A stretch of DNA of 44,837 bases, counting the filler, from Asterias rubens (taxonomy: Eukaryota): the NCBI RefSeq assembly GCF_902459465.1. It is 2 parts of 2 records of this genome, joined end to end, with 100 filler letters (N's around TTAATTAATTAA, not from the genome) between each part and the next. Parts side by side here need not be neighbours in the genome. Positions count along the whole stretch, not along the records: positions 1 to 25,019 come from NC_047065.1; 1 more part is not named here. One strand, given 5' to 3'. Both the position numbers and the translations under genes were made by a program. Under the pieces are notes generated by a model. It searched no databases and was not told the DNA's origin. It saw nothing but the letters and a program-made list of their open reading frames with translations. Below are positions 421 to 24,760 of this stretch, in pieces. Each line of letters begins with the position of its first letter. The first letter of the stretch is position 1.

Positions 421-625
421 CAGATCCACTTCCTACTCCTAAGACACGGAGCTCATTGTCTTGGTCCAAGTTTGGGAGATGAGGGACGATCTTGTCGAGT
501 AGCACTGTCTTGGTCCAGGTGTCCTGACGTTCGTACTTGGCAGAGTACACACTGAAAGTCTCATACGCCTTTAAGTAGCGGTCCCGGTTGGCAAATAAAC
601 GCATCATGGGCTTAGAAGCTGCCAT
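421..625 (-). CDS. HNMT: HNMT-like methyltransferase gene A, coding exon 1 (remaining exons lie left of the window)
   Basis: ATG at 625; MAASKPMMRLFANRDRYLKAYETF...LRVLGVGSGSG aligns with the human HNMT N-terminus and SAM motif I (ILSIGGGAG). Phase-1 donor G|GTAAGG at 420 gives a 205-nt exon. The symbol is family-level; orthology was not tested. Confidence 0.9.
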
Positions 626-3319: not shown

Positions 3320-3700
3320 TTAAAGGCAGTGGACACTATTGGTAATTACTCAAAATAATTATTAGCATAAAACCTTTCTTGGTGACGAGTAATGGGGAGA
3401 GATTGATGGTAACAAACATTTTTAGAAACGGCTCACTCTAAAGTGACGTAGTTTTCGAGAAAGAAGTAATTTTCCACGAATTTGATTTCGAGACCTCAGA
3501 TTTAGGACTTGAGGTCTCGAAATCAAGCATCTAAAAGCACACAACTCCGTGTGACAAGGATGTTTTTTCTTTCATTATTATCTCGCAACTTCGATGACCG
3601 ATTGAGCTCAAATTTTCACAGGTTTGTTATTTTATGCATATGTTGAGATACACCAAGTGAGAAGACTGGTCTTTGACAATTACCAATAGTGTCCACTGGC
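3320..3700 (+). mobile_element. Kolobok/T2-type MITE, ~370-bp family
   Basis: TTAA|AGGCAGTGGACACTATTGGTAATT left end, inverted aattaccaatagtgtccact right end; many further copies in the window. Confidence 0.85.
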
Positions 3701-5195
3701 TGTGAAATTTTTCCATGTGTACAAACACGACTAGTATTTTCTTCGCAATGTTTTTAAATGTATTTTGTGATTGTTAATCTAGAGAACTCGAGGTACACTA
3801 CAATTTCCGATGTTTTAGGTTTTTAGCTTTTAGCTTTAAATCATTCTAATCTAACCTAATCTAATCTAATCTAACAATGCGTTAAACTGCCAACAAACTG
3901 GATTTTTTTCAATTGTTAGCCCACAACAGTTAGATTGGTTCGTAAAATGTGGAGAACACTTTTTAAAACGAGGGAGAACTGTAATCAAAATTTAGTTACT
4001 TTAAAATCCTGTAAAATAATTTCTTTTTTTTTGACTGGTAAGATAATTTCAAGCCATGAAGTATCATTGTTGAGTCTAGACTACACCTGGTAGGCCTACC
4101 TATTTAAGTATAGTATATATGTCTACATTATAAGAGAAAAATAATCAACGGTTTGTGCTTTTAACAACAGAGAAATTATGTTCAAATAATAAATAACTCT
4201 TTATTAGAAAAAACACCAACTCAAATACTTTCAAAATGACATTGAAAGCGCCTGTTGGTCCCTCTGAAAGTGCAATTTGATTGCAGATCTATCCAGTACA
4301 CCCAAAAGCTTGTTACGGATACCTGACCCATACGGGTACCTACCCTGTATGGTATCCTGACAACATCAATATGGAACCACAGCAGAACCTGACTATTTTT
4401 CACGTGAGAAGTCCGTCGTCTGCTAGGTTTTCTGTATTGTTTTAAATTTGATTTTTTTCAGGGTGAAGGACTAAAAATTAGCCTTGGTATCCACCATTTT
4501 CGAATTCAGCACCCCACATTAGTTAAATCAGGTATGTTACCAACTTTTACTCATAAATGAAATCTGGTCTAGACTACATCAATCAGAAGCCTGGCTGGAA
4601 GAGCAGAACTACCTACCCTGTGCTGTAACACTAACCCAGTGAGCCGTAACCTTGGACGTGAAATGTCAAGGCGTACGCATAGGGCACACACACAACAGGC
4701 AGGGGGTAAAAGGCTGATGGATTCCAGAGTGTTGGCACTATACAACTAAATATTTATAAAGCGCCTTTACATCAAGATCAAACGATGTAAAGAGCAAAAC
4801 CAATGGAACTATAAATACAACAAATTACATCTGATACAAGTGAGTTTTGTGATATTTTTTGAACAAAGGCAAAGAGTTATAATTTCTGATGCGTACAGGT
4901 ATGTTGTCCCATAATATTCACTATTGGCACTCGACATTTTGTTCATGTGAACATACAAAATACTTGCGTCTCACCTTGATGTCAAAAATGAAACAGTTGT
5001 TTGCTGTACTTAATCTTATAACGGCCAGCAGGGTGGACGGTCCAAGTCCAAACGTTGCTTTAAAGCAAAATACAGGTCTTGGATTAAACTGATTGGAGGA
5101 TCGTCTTGACAAAATAGACCACCGACTCTTCTAACACTACGTGGTGACCTTCATCAGATGTCCATGAGCCGTAGTGACGTGTATTTTAATTTACA

Positions 5196-5713: not shown

Positions 5714-5864
5714 GGAAAACCGTGTGTACTAAGGTCTTCTTAGCAACACATATCTATCTGTGCTGCGAGATTGTCAGATGTGTTTTTTTTTGTAGCTATA
5801 AGTAGTCTGTAGTCGGATAAACCGTTGGTTTGGACACTGTTGGTGATTACTCAAAATAAATGAT

Positions 5865-6655
5865 TATAACACACCTCTGTTTGTTTTTTTTTATTCTGAT
5901 TGGCTGAAACACGGTCACGTGGGTGAACTATTATACACATTGACTGGCAATGAGGTATAGTGTACGTCTATTCCCCCAAGGGACTTTGAGTGACCAGAAG
6001 AGGGACCTAAATAGGCCCCTCGTCTGGTCGATCAGGCCCGAGGGGGAAAGACGTACACTTTTAGTTACCGAAATATACCAGTCAATATGTGTTTTATAAC
6101 ACAGCTCGGTCTTAAATATCAATTAAAAACAGAAATCTGGAAAAGAAAGGAAGTTTTGAGAGAGAGGGCGCTGTAACCGGGCACTATTTTCAAAGACTAA
6201 TGCCCGCTCGGGTACTGGTTCCTGAAAAACACACGCGCGCGATCACAAGACTATAGTTCATCCTACGTGACCGTGTTTATCTCTGTCCTTACTCTATGGT
6301 TTAGCCAACCAGAATACAGAACAAGCAAGAGGTGTGTTATAGTCTAGTGATCGCGCGCGCATGATAGTGTCCGACCGGGCATAAGTCTTTTAATTTTTGA
6401 CTGGTAACAGGGCCCTCTATAGACGAGAACCGTGGATATAGCAACTCTGCAAAACTTCCTTTCCTTTCAAATTGTTATATTTTATGTCAAATTGACCGAG
6501 GTGAACTGGCATTAGTCGGTACATAGTGCACGTCTATTCCCCCTCGGGCATTTGACTGACCAGAAGAGGGACCTCCGCTAGTCACGTCACTCAAAGTGCC
6601 TCGGGGAATAGACGTACACTATTTTACCTCATTGCCAGTCAATAATTATGTGTAT
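5865..6655. mobile_element. Cluster of palindromic non-autonomous DNA elements (tataacacacctct...agaggtgtgttata family)
   Basis: TIR tataacacacctct (5865) / agaggtgtgttata (to ~6341). Internal hairpins with cccgagggg / ccctcggg motifs; ~5936-5990 is the reverse complement of ~6585-6650. The paralogous copy (13552-18845) is split by the LINE. Confidence 0.7.
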
Positions 6656-6734
6656 ACAAATTAACCCGGAAGTGATAACAATAATGTGAGAGCGTCGTCG
6701 TGCGGTCACGGGCCATTCATTCTGCTTTGGACTC

Positions 6735-7099
6735 TCAGTTATCAGACAGCTTTTTAGTAACGATGACTGCATCCCATTCAACATTGATGATGACTCTACT
6801 CCCGTCTTTCTTTGAGCACTCACTGCTGGCTAGAAGCTCAATCACGTCTTGATACTGTGAGGCGGTTGCCTTCTTTTTAAACTGCGTCACTGCGAGGATG
6901 AATTCAAGCAAGAGTTCCCCGTCTTCAGACGTCTTGTCGAAGCACTGGGTGATATCCACTTCACAGTTTTGGTGACTGTGGGTGTATGGAATGTTACGTT
7001 GGTTGAACGGGCTCTGCAATGAAGCAAGGCCAAAGTACCGCACATCCTGTTTCAAGGAATCAGGAACACTTCTCCAGAGCTTGAACCAACTACTCTCGT
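6735..7099 (-). CDS. HNMT: HNMT-like gene B, exon 3 (last, includes TGA)
   Basis: Acceptor ttcttttgcag|; ESSWFKLW...VDITQCFD...GELLLEF...KKDGSRVIIN matches human SSGWDKLW...MDISDCF...GDLLWDF...KKEGKVLFN; 365 nt. Confidence 0.95.
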
Positions 7100-7499
7100 C
7101 TGCAAAAGAAAATATCAAATTATACCAGGAGAGTTCATCACAACATGTACAACAACAATATAATAATACAAGACATTGCTAGAGTGTAGGATCGTTTCGT
7201 CAATTCATTGTCTGTAATTTGTTTAAAAGGCACTATGGATACTATTGGTAAATTAATTTGCTCTAAATAATTGTTGCCATAAAACCTTACTTGTTAGCGA
7301 TCAATAGAGAGATGTTGATAGCATAAAACATTGTAGAAGAAACGGCTCCCAAAGTAACGTCGTTTTCGGGAAAGAAGTGGTTTTCCACTAAAATATTTTG
7401 AACTTGATTTCAAAACTTCAGAATGAGATTTTGAGTCGGATCGCTATCACCCACGACAGACATTATTTTGTAACGACTTGTCCATAAGTCTAATTTTAC

Positions 7500-7820
7500 C
7501 TGACATGATAATGACAAGCAATTTGCCACCAGGTTCAAGGAGGTCGTACATATACATCAAGGAGCTCTCTACGTCACCAACGTGGTACAGGGAGTGAATA
7601 GCGCTGATGAAATGAAACTTGGTTCCAATTCCGTCAGTATCTCTGTACTGTTCAAGGGTTTGCTGTCGCCAGTCAAACTTTACACCTTGTAGTTCGTGTC
7701 CCTTGGATTGGACCAGTGCTTTGTACTTGTTGATTTGATCTTCGGCAGGTTCAACTACACGGTTCGTGATGATCGGAAATTTCTTCAGGAGTGCGGTCAG
7801 GAATGGATACTCTATCTCCC
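7500..7820 (-). CDS. HNMT: HNMT-like gene B, exon 2 (not in the ORF track)
   Basis: Acceptor ttctctataaag|, donor G|GTAAAA; 321 nt, phase 1-1. EIEYPFLTALLKKFPIITNRVVEPAEDQINKYKALV...VKFDWRQQT...KFHFISAIHSLYHVGD...LLEPGGKLLVIIMS matches human VVEPSAEQIAKYKELV and FIHMIQMLYYV. Confidence 0.95.
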
Positions 7821-8551
7821 CTTTATAGAGAACAGTTCAATTAGTTGAAGTTAAGAATAATTATTGAGGGGATTGATAAATATACAGGTTCGTAACTTCA
7901 GGCTGTTAATAAAAGTGTGCTCTAATTAAGTTCGAGCTTAAAACAGCTCAACTTTAAAGCCTTTTTTCCTGATTAATATACTTTTTACTGGTGTGTTGTT
8001 AACAAATAAATTGCTAGCATTGCCTTGCTCGTTCCCGCCCTGCCCAGTTTTCACCATTTTCAAAGCTCAAACATGTCAATCTCCTGCTTATTATATCTGA
8101 ACTTGTTTACCATTATTCCCCTACTCGGACTTAATACGTTAAACTCAAAAGTCATTGTTTCTACAAAAGCTTTCTTTCCCTTTTTCACATGGCCACTGAT
8201 CATTTTCTTACGCCGCCACCATTACTATATAATTTTTTACAGTATTCCATGTGCATAATCGCCAGACTAGTATTTTACACTGTTTTAAGTCGCTGTTAAA
8301 AACTCTCTTTTTTTAAGCTGCTTATTTTTGTAATTATGCTTTTAATTTTGTATCTTTCACTCGCTGTGTTATTATTTATTATTTGTTGTTCTCTTTGTGC
8401 GCACAAGGGGGCTTTTTTTGCATTAGGAGCTTTACACATGTCTTCATTTTGTTGTTATTATTAAGTTATTGGATTTGAAAATTCATATGCTCAGAATTGT
8501 AAATCATATTTCTGTATTGCAGCAAAATGATTATTTGAAACACTGCCTTAC

Positions 8552-8741
8552 CAGATCCACTGCCTACTCCTAAGACACGGAGCTCATTGTCTTGGTCCAA
8601 GTTTGGGAGATGAGGGACGATCTTGTCGAGTAGCACTGTCTTGCTCCAAGTGTCCTGCCGTTCATACTTGTTTGAAGATGCAATGAAAGCCTCATACGAC
8701 TTCATATAGCGATCTTCGTAATGTAACTTAGATTCAGCCAT
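8552..8741 (-). CDS. HNMT: HNMT-like gene B, exon 1; full CDS join(8552-8741, 7500-7820, 6735-7099) = 291 aa, intact
   Basis: ATG at 8741 (MAESKLHYEDRY...VLGVGSGSG), donor G|GTAAGG; 190+321+365 = 876 nt in one frame; human HNMT is 292 aa. Confidence 0.95.
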
Positions 8742-9890
8742 TTTGATCTGTCGTTTTCTCTCGCCGTCTGAAGAAGCACTGCCTGCCAACACAAAAACAC
8801 CCGATGAATAAAAGTAGTCTCACACGAGACAGTAACGTACAGGCAGGTCCGCAGGCAAACTCCATTGCTCATTATTGATTCATATTTCAGTTTTCTCATT
8901 ATAGTTTCATGTGACTTAGTTACTGCTACCTTCGGTTCGGTATCCGAAACGTGACCGAAACGGTGCTTTACGACCACCAAAACACACCCAACCGCAACCT
9001 CGTCCCCATGGTTTACTTTGTTTTCAACCATGTTTACAATAGTAAACCCTGGGATGGAAACTCCTATACTTGGATCCTGATTGGACAACTATTTTACATT
9101 ACTTGATCGTGTCCGCCCGGACGCTGCTGCATAATGCAATGTGTCCGCGGTGACACATTTTCATATGCACTTGTGTCCGCCCCCGTGTAAAACCGTCCTT
9201 GCAGTAAATTAAACGCCATTGGTCGACGGAACACGTTCTCCTTTTTTTACAAGCTAAATGCAGGTCATGAAATTTTCGGCTGCATATACTGCATATGTAC
9301 GTAGGTCCAGTGCATGCACACTCATTTAAGCGGGCACATACCATGTACAATGTCCACCGGATTGTTTTTGCATAGCCCCGGACACGATTGCATATGCAAA
9401 AGTCGACTGACACCGCTACAACACTGCCACCGCAACGACATATAGACTTCTTCACCCCGAAGTCAAATTTTGTACAGTAACTAGATCATGAACATACTCA
9501 CCTTATATTAAAATATGGTCAAAATAGATCGACTGCAGTGTTTTGCTAAATTTCATGTAAGGGTTGGCTGAAACATCCTGACGACAACAATAGACAAAGC
9601 AATACCTTTGAATGTACATATTATACTCCACTCCAACAAATTGCACAGTGACCAATATTTACCTTCAAAGATTAGGCATAGGCATAATAGTGTAAAACTC
9701 ACGCGCTGGAAGTCAACTGCATAAAATATTCAGATTCAGTCCTTCCCGCGCAGTGCCCATGAACTCGGAGCAAGGTCGTGCCCTCTATTGTCGACTGTTA
9801 ATAAAAACCTACACGGCAGCTAAAGGTTGTATGGCTTCTGAATGGCACCCCTGAACACTATTTACAAAATAGGGACACCGCCAATATATA

Positions 9891-9943
9891 GGACTAGATA
9901 GCTCAGTTGGTAGAGCGCCGGCACGTTTGTTCGAATTCCACTC
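9891..9943 (+). mobile_element. tRNA-derived SINE head fragment (copy at 22366-22420)
   Basis: A-box tagctcagttgg and B-box gttcgaattcc with the anticodon/variable region deleted; cannot fold into a tRNA. Confidence 0.7.
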
Positions 9944-10039
9944 TTCCTATAGTCAATTCTTTGTTCTTTATCACCCGGCAATTCGACCCTGCAAGGTTTT
10001 AAACGGCCGTAGAACTAGTAACTACCCTTTTATTTCCAT

Positions 10040-10222
10040 TCATAAATAAGGGAATCAGTGTTTGGTGAAGAGGTTTTCAACTACTGGTTTAATCCCAACG
10101 AGACTGGTTCTTGATAAACTTTTACCGAGACGAAGTCGAGGTAAATTAAGAACAAGGCCTCGGCGGGTTTAAACCACATAGTTGAAAACCGATTCAACAC
10201 ACGATGATTCCCATTTATAAAT
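10040..10222. mobile_element. Palindromic MITE (copy at ~22515-22697, half copy ~31330-31410)
   Basis: taaataagggaatc...ggttttcaacta / tagttgaaaacc...gattcccattta inverted arms. Confidence 0.7.
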
Positions 10223-21064: not shown

Positions 21065-22844
21065 TATGATCTGTCGTTTTCTCTCGCCGTCTGAAGAAGC
21101 ACTGCCTGCCAACACAAAAACACCCGATGAATAAAAGAAGTCTCACACGAGACAGTAACGTACAGGCAGGTCCGCAGGCAAACTCCATTGCTCATTATTG
21201 ATTCATATTTCAGTTTTCTCATTATAGTTTCATGTGGTTTAGTCACTGCTATCTTCGGTTCGGTATCCGAAACGTGACCGAAACGGTGCTTTACGACCAC
21301 CAAAACACACCCAACCGCAACCTCGTCCCCATGGTTTACTTTGTTTTCAACCATGTTTACAATAGTAAACCCTGGGATGGAAACTCCTATACTTGGATCC
21401 TGGTTGCACAACTATTTTACATTACTTGAATATGTTCCATATTCATAGGTACAGCCAGCCGCCGGTGTCGCATGCGGATATGTTCTCTATGCAATACTAT
21501 CCGGAGGACACTATTGCATATGCAATAATGTCCGCCGGACGGTTTTGCATATGTAATCGTGTCCGCCCGGACGCTGCTGCATAATGCAATGTGTCCGCGG
21601 TGACACATTTGAATATGCACTTGTGTCCGCCCCCGTGTAAAACCGTCCTTGCAGTAAATTAAACGCCATTGGTCGACGGAACACGTTCTCCTTTTTTTAC
21701 AAGCTATAAATGCAGGTCATGAAATTTTCGGCCGTTGGGTATTCGCTGCAATCATAAATACGTGAATATTCATGCTGCATATGTATGTATAGGTCCAGTG
21801 CATGCACACTCGTTTACGCGGGCACATACCATGTACAATGTCCACCGGATTGTTTTTGCATAGCCCCGGACACGATTGCATATGCAAAAGTCGACTGACA
21901 CCGCTACAACACTGCCACCGCAACGACATAGAGACTTCTTTACCCCGAAGTCAAATTTTGTACAGTAACTAGATCATGAACATACTCACCTTATATTATA
22001 AAAAATATGGTCAAAATAGATCGACTGCAGTGTTTTGCTGAATGTCATGTAAGGGTCAATAGAAGCAAAGCAATACCTTTGAATGTACATATCATACTCC
22101 ACTCCAACAAATTGCACAGTGACCAGTATTTACCTTCAAAGACTAGGCATAGGCATAATAGTGTAAAACTCACGCGCTGGAGGTCAACTGCATAAAATAT
22201 TCAGATTCAGTCCTTCCCGCGGAGTGCCCATGAACTCGGCGCAAGGTCGTGCCCTCTATTGTTGACTGTTTATAAAAAAAAACCTACACGGCAGTTAACG
22301 GTTGTATGGCTTCTGAATGGCACCCCTGACCACTATTGACAAAATAGGGACACCGCCAATATATAGGGCTAGATAGCTCAGTTGGTAGAGCGCCGGCACG
22401 TTTGTGCGAATTCCACTCTTCCTATAGTCAATTCTTTGTTCTTTATCACACGGCAATTCGACCCTGCAAGGTTTTAAACGGCCGTAGAACTAGTAACTAC
22501 CCTTTTATTCCCATTCATAAATAAGGGAATCAATGTTTGGTGAAGAGGTTTTCAACTAGTGGTTTAATCCCAACGAGACTGGTTCTCGATAAACTTTTAC
22601 CGAGACGAAGTCGAGGTAAATTAAGAACCAGGCCTCGGCGGGTTTAAACCACATAGTTGAAAACCGATTCAACACACTTTGATTCCCATTCATAAATACC
22701 TTTTCGGTCAAAAAACATCAACACTTTTGGTCAAAAAGTAAAATAAATGCAAACATTTTAATTGTTGAATGATTTCTTTCAACACAACACCCCTCCAGCT
22801 ATGAAACGGTAAGGCCCTCCTTCGGGTAAACAACTCCTTATAAG

Positions 22845-23520: not shown

Positions 23521-23785
23521 TTAAAGACACTGGACAATATTGGTAATTGTCAAAGACCAGTCTTCTCACTTGGTGTATCTCAACATAATGCATAGAAATA
23601 ACAAACCTGTGAAAATGTCAGCTCAATCGGTCGTCGAAGTTGAGAGATAATAATGGAAGAAAAACACCCTTGACACACGAAGTTGTGTGCTGTCTGGTGC
23701 TTGATTTCGAGACCTCAAGTTCTAAATCTGAGGTCTCGAAATCAAATTCGTAGAAAATTACTTCTTTCTCGAAAACTACTTTTGA
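23521..23785 (-). mobile_element. Truncated copy of the 370-bp Kolobok-type MITE
   Basis: ttaaagacactggacaatattggtaattgtcaaagaccagtc... is the reverse complement of the 3' two-thirds of 3320-3700. Confidence 0.8.
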
Positions 23786-24161: not shown

Positions 24162-24760
24162 GGTCAACTTTAGGGATCGGTGATGACCGATTGCAAAAAG
24201 CCACCACCGATCCCTAAGTTGACTGATTGCAAAAAGCCACCACCGATCCCTAAAGTTGACTGATTGCAAAAAGCCACCACCGATCCCTGAAGTTGACCGA
24301 TTGCAAAAAGCCACCACCGATCACTAAAGTTGACCGCATGCAAAAAGCCATCACCGATCCCTAAAGTTGACCGATTGCAAAAAGCCACCACCGATCACTA
24401 AAGTTGACCGATTGCAAAATTCCATCACCGGTTGCAAAAGTTGACCGATTGCAAAAAGCCACCACCGATCCATAAAGTTGACCGATTGCAAAAAGCCATC
24501 ACCGATCCCTAAAGTTGACCGATTGCAAAAAGCCATCACCGATCACTAAAGTTGACCGATTGCAAAAAGCCATCAACGGTCGTGAATATGCATGACCGAT
24601 CGCTAATACCATCACCGATCATGAAAAAGCATGGCCGATCGCTAAAATGGACCACCGATCGTGTTTTACGACCGATTGCTAAAGTTGATCACCGATCGCA
24701 TAGGACCACCACCGATGACAAATTTGATCACCGGTTGCAAAAGACCATCACCGATGATTA
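24162..24760. repeat. 37-bp minisatellite (11 conserved copies plus degenerate tail) preceded by an inverted partial unit
   Basis: Unit gttgaccgattgcaaaaagccaccaccgatccctaaa; gattgc (one variant gcatgc) recurs at 24189, 24225, 24262, 24299 ... 24558; 24162-24185 is an exact reverse complement of part of the unit. Confidence 0.95.

Follow-up and report, generated by a model that had tools for sequence, protein, structure and literature searches.

Vertebrate histamine N-methyltransferase (HNMT; Enzyme Commission number EC 2.1.1.8; PDB 1JQD and 2AOT) is an enzyme of ~291 amino acids with a two-domain fold, in which E28, Q143 and N283 hydrogen-bond ligands (PMC9867436) and Y147 and C196 contact the amino group of histamine (PMC3660329). 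A preliminary description of the DNA studied here had invoked a chicken paralog as evidence that the fold switches substrate, and this precedent is real: carnosine N-methyltransferase 2 (CARNMT2; UniProt U3NEE3) is a tandem duplicate with the HNMT fold and a carboxylate substrate, switched via changes at positions 147 and 196, and its loss of histamine activity accompanies changes at just Y147 and C196 (PMC3660329). HNMT-like genes are also arrayed in tandem in sea urchin and acorn worm (Drozak et al., PMC3660329), as they are in the sea star Asterias rubens, the subject of this work. The window that we analyzed is a joined stretch of 44,837 nucleotides from A. rubens (assembly GCF_902459465.1); all window coordinates given below belong to its first part (positions 1-25,019, NC_047065.1), which is intron-bearing, has ~40% GC and is letter-identical to the chromosome record LR699095.1 at ~11.69-11.71 Mb.

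Three related HNMT-like genes were found on the minus strand of this part, B and C being whole and A represented by its first exon alone. They are tandem genes for predicted cytosolic HNMT-like methyltransferases dependent on S-adenosylmethionine (SAM), and are annotated in RefSeq. The product of gene B (exons 8741-8552, 7820-7500 and 7099-6735; 291 amino acids) is 100% identical to P0175 (XP_033625518.1), and that of gene C (18923-21064; exons 21064-20875, 20008-19688 and 19287-18923; 291 amino acids) is P0229 (XP_033625519.1), both named "histamine N-methyltransferase-like". Gene C lies 12.3 kb upstream of gene B and is organized in the same way; their products are 94.5% identical, and neither gene shows a lesion in its reading frame, its start or stop codon, or any of its four splice sites. 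The annotation of these genes and the HNMT family were known already; what is new here is a non-histamine pocket signature that extends over the whole family, and an Asterias sub-clade that has undergone an additional charge reversal and diverges fast. With modest confidence, we lean toward regarding B and C as intact, fast-diversifying small-molecule methyltransferases whose substrate would not be histamine and would probably be anionic.

HNMT fold and substrate pocket

The proposal that these genes encode HNMT-fold enzymes was borne out by sequence searches and by superposition of a predicted structure. Searched with phmmer against the PDB, the gene B protein matched 1jqd (E=1.7e-31), with 27-28% identity to HNMT. 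Exons 2 and 3, taken singly, match only human HNMT in the PDB (E=6.5e-13 for exon 2; E=1.7e-3 for exon 3, residues 177-284), and exon 2 is also recognized in Pfam, by Methyltransf_23 above the cut-off and by Methyltransf_12. Exons 1 and 3 alone had no match in Pfam, and exon 1 alone had none in the PDB. An AlphaFold2 model of the gene B protein, built on an alignment of 81 sequences (mean predicted local distance difference test score, pLDDT, 90.8; predicted template modeling score, pTM, 0.88), was superposed by Foldseek on 1jqd_A over 285 columns with template modeling (TM) scores of 0.88/0.90 and a root-mean-square deviation of 2.0 A; the next fold reached a TM score of 0.56. Among Swiss-Prot models, the close matches were only vertebrate HNMTs and chicken CARNMT2 (TM 0.88). 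Gene B has the two domains of HNMT, namely a Rossmann SAM domain and an inserted substrate domain. The family is small: a search with exon 2 against 1.84 billion representatives yielded only 227 clusters (50% identity) at E<=1e-3.

Residues were called from a MAFFT alignment of 112 sequences, in which the numbering of Macaca HNMT (292 amino acids) equals the human numbering, and all the calls of the preliminary description were reproduced. In the SAM site, G60, G62 and G64 are kept (invariant in the 81 sequences), as are E89 and Q94, which correspond to E87 and Q92 of B and C. The aromatic residues are also kept, Y15, F22, Y146, W179, W183, Y198 and F243 of HNMT being Y12, F19, Y142, W175, W179, Y192 and F237 in B. 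On the other hand, the polar residues that hold histamine are gone: E28 is replaced by K in A, B and C (K25 in B), Q143 by H139, Y147 by H143 and N283 by V277, whereas E246 is A240 in B and H in C. A deletion of four residues at the N-terminus has removed the F9 region from B and C.

Two replacements were found beyond those already described: a second charge reversal, D193 to K187, and M144 to S140, the latter being family-wide (S144). Additionally, C196 is V190 in B and L in C. Altogether, the eight histamine-contact positions E28, Q143, M144, Y147, D193, C196, E246 and N283 are occupied in B and C by K25, H139, S140, H143, K187, V190 (L in C), A/H240 and V277, respectively. Neither the ligand-bonding set of true HNMT (E28, Q143 and N283) nor the residues at its amino-group contacts (Y147 and C196, together with D193, which we take to be another such contact) are preserved. 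The resulting pocket is net basic and histidine-rich (K25, K187, H139 and H143, plus H240 in C).

If these residues are disposed as in HNMT, SAM would bind in the same way, because motifs and fold are kept, and the methyl group would go to a small molecule held in the aromatic cage. The polar end of this cage would consist of two lysines and two or three histidines in place of two acids, Gln, Asn, Tyr and Cys. With every histamine-holding polar residue replaced, it is unlikely that histamine binds as it does in HNMT. The acceptor would probably be a small nitrogen nucleophile (heteroaromatic, imidazole, guanidino or amine), with a carboxylate, sulfonate or phosphate that would pair with the two lysines. 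Moreover, the shortened N-terminus would leave the pocket more open than in HNMT, with room for a ligand larger than histamine.

The substrate switch of CARNMT2 offers a comparison but not a template. CARNMT2 belongs to the vertebrate clade and is a paralog, not an ortholog, of B and C; it keeps E28, Q143 and N283 in the vertebrate pattern, and has R147, G196 and an N-terminal extension of ~30 amino acids. B and C have H143 and V190/L190 at the two switched positions, and their N-terminus is four residues shorter than that of HNMT. These differences bear on a narrower form of the reading that we favor, in which the family, in parallel with CARNMT2, would methylate imidazoles carrying a carboxylate (histidine, imidazole or urocanic acids, or histidine dipeptides), with K28 binding the carboxylate. 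Carnosine is the only non-histamine substrate known for the HNMT fold, and CARNMT2 gained R147 (PMC3660329); in addition, a Patiria miniata protein of this family, P0170 (WAS27816.1), was deposited as "putative histidine methyltransferase-like protein". However, B and C have H rather than R at 147, V rather than G at 196 in the case of B, and lack the N-terminal extension; both have also lost N283, the residue by which the imidazole nitrogen is oriented. P0170 stands on a distant branch with W28 and F143, and a literature search on Patiria and histidine methyltransferase, which left most subscription journals outside, found no paper explaining its name. We regard this substrate class as distinctly unlikely for the family.

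Pocket types in deuterostomes and the Asterias clade

Counts over 56 named sequences from invertebrate deuterostomes, namely sea stars, sea urchins, brittle star, crinoid, acorn worm and amphioxus, revealed that most of the replacements described above are old. Of the 56 sequences, 43 have K28, 37 have H143, 47 have S144 and 43 have H or Q at position 246. These four states prevail in sea urchins, brittle stars, sea cucumbers, crinoids, acorn worms and all sea-star paralogs. The vertebrate sequences have E28 in 10 of 10, and Q143, M144 and E246 in 9 of 10, with a shark HNMT-like protein as the exception at those three positions. Judged from the sequences compared, K28, H143, S144 and H/Q246 make up a signature ancestral to the echinoderm and hemichordate HNMT-like family. 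As a trait of the A. rubens genes in particular, the "charge-reversed, rewired" pocket of the preliminary description does not hold, for K28 proved to be widespread in invertebrate HNMT-likes and not specific to these genes. That description had also coupled an ancestral K28/H143 with an already known substrate; the two residues are indeed ancestral, but no known substrate was found to go with them.

Gene B fits the K28-type clade by its K25, H139, S140 and Y142, and is nested in the sea-star clade (support 99); at position 246 it has A240, whereas C has H240 and the orthologs in Asterias amurensis have Q or H. The more conserved members of the family, which we call the core type, include P0181 of A. 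rubens, P0160 of Acanthaster and P0159 of Patiria, whose pocket (K28, H143, Y147, D193, H246 and N282-N283) is that of the urchin and acorn worm proteins. Core proteins such as XP_786900 of S. purpuratus, Acanthaster P0160, A. rubens P0181 and Ptychodera P0190 are 46-52% identical to B and C and share with them the family signature K28, H143, S144, Y146 and H246. Y147, D193, N282-N283 and the F9 segment, all lost within the clade of A, B and C, are retained by the core type in both starfish orders as well as in urchins, brittle star and acorn worm.

Acorn worms have both kinds of pocket. P0069 of Saccoglossus kowalevskii (XP_006821830) has the full vertebrate-type pocket (E28, Q143, M144, Y147, W179, W183, C196, Y198, E246 and N283), and P0109 of Ptychodera flava has it largely complete; acorn worms have several K28-type paralogs as well. 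No protein with E28, Q143, M144, C196 and E246 was found among the labeled echinoderm sequences, which are not an exhaustive sample. In the tree, the E28-type proteins of acorn worms group with vertebrate HNMT (Shimodaira-Hasegawa-like approximate likelihood ratio test, SH-aLRT, 84-88), and the A. rubens genes lie inside an ambulacrarian clade apart from this vertebrate, Saccoglossus and Ptychodera group, so that by the tree they are unlikely to be orthologs of HNMT. Nevertheless, a single ambulacrarian clade was not rejected by the approximately unbiased (AU) test (p=0.30), and we take the ancient paralogy of the two pocket types as likely rather than shown. The two types probably date, on the available sequences, to the deuterostome ancestor. 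As both occur in one animal, the comparison drawn here is not one between an enzyme and its mutated ortholog.

These data also bear on whether the A. rubens proteins might still be histamine N-methyltransferases that hold histamine in another pose. Their RefSeq name is HNMT-like, their fold, SAM site and aromatic cage are kept and, given that no vertebrate-type pocket appeared among the labeled echinoderm sequences, something else would otherwise have to inactivate histamine in these animals. Yet all eight polar and contact positions are changed, the two acid-to-lysine swaps would repel a protonated amine, and the chicken paralog lost its histamine activity with far fewer changes (PMC3660329). 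The side-by-side presence of both pocket types in acorn worms, moreover, implies different jobs. Retention of histamine as substrate is, in our judgment, very improbable.

All 35 sea-star sequences form one clade (support 99), within which 12 Asterias sequences (support 99) and 23 sequences of Patiria and Acanthaster represent separate expansions. A, B, C, their A. amurensis orthologs and P0179, which is located 150 kb from the tandem genes, make up a nine-member clade (support 100) on a stem of 0.40 substitutions per site. On this stem D193 was replaced by K and Y147 was lost; most members have H at the latter position, but two A. amurensis copies have N or D. Only B and C and the two A. amurensis orthologs of this pair carry N283V and the N-terminal deletion, and E246A is found in B only. 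Neither a 1:1 ortholog of the A/B/C clade nor the same combination of pocket residues was found in Patiria or Acanthaster.

Starfish of different orders are said to use 1-methyladenine, and the preliminary description had raised the idea that the methyltransferase behind this oocyte-maturation hormone might be found here. Two premises of the 1-METHYLADENINE idea stood, as the organism is indeed a sea star and the methyl-transfer enzyme was still unknown in a 2023 review, in which 1-methyl-AMP and 1-methyladenosine are regarded as probable intermediates (PMC10216564). A nucleotide could perhaps fit into a basic pocket that has two lysines and a shortened N-terminal lid, and the sea-star HNMT-likes form one clade that expanded in sea stars only. 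What weakens the idea is that the A/B/C clade is restricted to Asterias, with no ortholog in the two valvatid genomes (Patiria and Acanthaster) despite the use of the hormone in different orders, and that pocket residues differ among B, C and the A. amurensis orthologs, which would be unexpected for a hormone synthase. Urchins, brittle stars, crinoids and acorn worms have the family no less than sea stars do, and the conserved core type extends beyond sea stars; 1-methyladenine is not known to be the maturation hormone of any of these other animals. In literature searches, no paper was found on a 1-methyladenine methyltransferase in Patiria, nor any that ties 1-methyladenine to HNMT-likes, most subscription journals again being outside their reach. 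That one of the three genes produces the N1-methyladenine moiety (with ATP, AMP or adenosine as acceptor) is a long shot, and we hold it as extremely unlikely; the broader version, in which some member of the sea-star K28-type expansion, possibly of the Asterias clade, is the N1-adenine methyltransferase that starts 1-methyladenine synthesis in follicle cells, strikes us as no less remote. If true, the link would be important.

Divergence of the tandem pair and candidate substrates

The tandem pair is also present in A. amurensis, represented by P0230 and P0231. The ratio of nonsynonymous to synonymous divergence (dN/dS, Nei-Gojobori) is 0.23-0.48 between the species, indicating constraint over the longer term, and 0.26 between the two A. 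amurensis copies. Synonymous sites cluster the copies by species, what points to gene conversion or independent duplication.

A different picture was obtained between B and C. Their coding sequences differ by 16 nonsynonymous codons and one synonymous codon (17.5 nonsynonymous and 1.5 synonymous differences by Nei-Gojobori, dN/dS 3.1), and dN (0.026) is near the divergence of noncoding DNA between the two units (introns and flanks, 0.023). Polarized by A. amurensis, the changes amount to 10 amino-acid replacements and one silent change in the B lineage, and to six and none in the C lineage. In simulations under neutrality, the probability of one synonymous change or fewer was 0.02-0.08, a borderline value on which we make no claim of positive selection. 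Several of the differences affect pocket positions or their immediate neighbors (HNMT 177/178, 194, 196, 244 and 246), but the enrichment is not significant, with exact hits in 2 of 16 against ~0.9 expected. B and C show no detectable purifying selection since they last shared sequence, which may reflect either diversifying selection or relaxed constraint.

Under the second of these options, gene B, and possibly gene C too, would be a superfluous recent duplicate on its way to losing its function by drift, and A240, S173/S174 and similar changes would be neutral decay. The equality of dN and noncoding divergence and the 10-to-1 ratio of replacements to silent changes in the B lineage are what drift would produce, and no RNA read carries the B-specific letters. 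Against drift, both copies have intact frames, starts, stops and splice sites, the residues of the SAM site and fold core are unchanged, and the pair was kept in A. amurensis with a dN/dS of 0.26 between its copies. The synonymous deficit would point, if anywhere, to selection for change, and the RNA runs appear to come from another species, which makes them uninformative on B. We consider drift unlikely, although it is the alternative to which we give most weight.

Our preference for functional, non-histamine enzymes must also be set against several features of the data. Statistically, neutral drift would suffice for the divergence of B and C, in which case one of the two may be losing its function. 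The position of the second lysine depends on the alignment: in a pairwise HMMER comparison with human HNMT the register shifts by two residues and D189 of B falls at D193, although in the family alignment the column is gap-free among echinoderm proteins, which have (Q/E)-D there, corresponding to human Q192-D193, where the Asterias clade has L-K. That K25 and K187 face the pocket is predicted from the alignment, and both "not histamine" and "anionic" are read from residue identities. Finally, the RNA reads have non-B letters at 6884, 6892 and 6893, within the B-specific codons 240 and 243, where they read either CAA, the triplet of one A. amurensis copy, or CAC, that of gene C; transcription is therefore documented for the gene group and not for B itself.

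For the intact, fast-diversifying methyltransferases that we favor, an order-specific tandem expansion, pockets that vary among paralogs and weak constraint fit the chemistry of a lineage-specific metabolite, an osmolyte or detoxification better than conserved hormone synthesis. The earlier suggestion that the substrate is not histamine and may be anionic agrees with a net basic pocket without histamine-holding polar residues, and goes as far as residue identities allow. One candidate role would be the synthesis of a methylated anionic metabolite typical of Asterias, for example asterubine, a dimethyl-guanidino sulfonate reported from a Japanese sea star and from sponges (PMC12903071). Papers on a homarine or picolinate methyltransferase, or on HNMT in echinoderm expression studies, were not found in the literature searched, which excluded most subscription journals.

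The annotation "histamine N-methyltransferase-like" spans the whole echinoderm and hemichordate family, and biochemical characterization would correct it. A concrete and cheap set of enzymes for this purpose comprises representatives of the conserved core type such as P0181 and P0160, B and C as the derived type, and P0069 as the HNMT type. Such work could reveal new N-methylation in marine invertebrates, involving osmolytes, alkaloids or signaling molecules.

Gene structure, transcripts and surroundings

The first coding exon of gene B (8552-8741, minus strand) begins with the ATG at 8741 and encodes residues 1-63 plus one base, including K25, which corresponds to E28 of HNMT, and the first part of the GxGxG SAM motif. 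It is followed by intron 1 (7821-8551, minus strand; 731 nt, GT-AG, phase 1) and by exon 2 (7500-7820, minus strand), which encodes the Rossmann core with E87, Q92, H139, S140, Y142 and H143. After intron 2 (7100-7499, minus strand; 400 nt, GT-AG, phase 1), exon 3 (6735-7099, minus strand; stop at 6737-6735) encodes the substrate-binding domain with W175, W179, K187, V190, Y192, F237, A240, N276 and V277. RNA-seq joints at exactly 7099/7500 and 7820/8552, seen in reads and contigs of all four runs, confirmed both introns. The runs appear to come from a related species or from other copies. Further sequencing runs, of unstated kind, contain 100% of the words of gene B exon 3.

Upstream of the ATG, the first coding exon includes part of the 5' untranslated region (UTR; 8742-8778, minus strand), with an acceptor AG at 8780-8779, and RNA reads stop matching past 8778. 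A candidate end of an upstream exon was recognized at 9703-9722 (minus strand), with an ATG (9722) and, following 9703, a GT donor. Joined to 8778, it is in frame and would add 19 residues, comparable to isoform X1 of A. amurensis (P0230, 310 amino acids); in A. rubens it remains a candidate. Its equivalent, with ATG and GT donor, is conserved upstream of gene C at 22174-22193 (minus strand). The RNA reads link 8778 not to 9703 but to another sequence, for which no match was found within the window, probably as a result of species difference. Just past the 3' UTR, the segment 6600-6676 has an RNA depth 5-20x that of the gene exons, with many reads unmatched on both sides and loose ends at 6603 and 6644; it is apparently a short repeated element transcribed from many places.

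Exon 1 of gene A is located at 421-625 (minus strand), the remaining gene being past the low edge of the part, and exon 2 was found 2.4 kb further in a public locus (L001, 20735-21060). The exon retains the F9 region, has K at HNMT position 28, and is 97% identical to A. amurensis P0180. In the same A. rubens locus, a public gene call that starts from the gene A ATG (L001, 18117-22007) has a product of 651 residues, suggesting a gene model that fuses two tandem copies, or else one or more additional HNMT-like copies downstream of A.

In self-blastn comparisons, the duplication unit of gene B (6161-10370) was ~94-98% identical to that of gene C (18377-22844). Between the two genes lies a degraded retrotransposon without long terminal repeats (non-LTR; 13962-18212, plus strand), identified by RVT_1 (E=5.4e-35) and zf-RVT in Pfam and outside the enzyme genes. 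Its open reading frames (ORFs) encode an ORF1-like product of 249 amino acids (13962-14711), a reverse transcriptase of 525 amino acids (15998-17575) and a third product of 265 amino acids with zf-RVT (17415-18212), the last overlapping and out of frame. The element splits the self-matches 5844-6158 versus 13533-13845 and 6161 versus 18377; as it breaks the flank of the gene C unit, it was probably inserted after the duplication. Gene C also has, at the border of exon 1 and intron 1 (20718-20886, minus strand), a segment of 135 bp that is absent from gene B. It lies between the copies of a 34-bp direct repeat; because this repeat contains the donor site, a second, unused donor copy is left in the intron. 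This extra segment is similar to the start of the gene A intron (311-571 versus 20765-21025, 84%).

Upstream of the tandem pair, the two Asterias assemblies have different genes, encoding a PPDK_N/PEP-utilizer protein of 1340 amino acids in A. amurensis (L002, 1-5763) and a DENND11/Avl9-like protein in A. rubens (L005, 1-5292), what suggests a rearrangement or different extents of the array. Two other repeats were observed in the first part of the window. An inverted pair of 254 bp with 92% identity (3448-3701 and 23525-23779), 20 kb apart and flanking B and C, probably represents copies of a dispersed repeat, and a tandem array with a period of ~37 bp (self-match offsets of 36-37, 84-89% identity) occupies positions 24184-24757.

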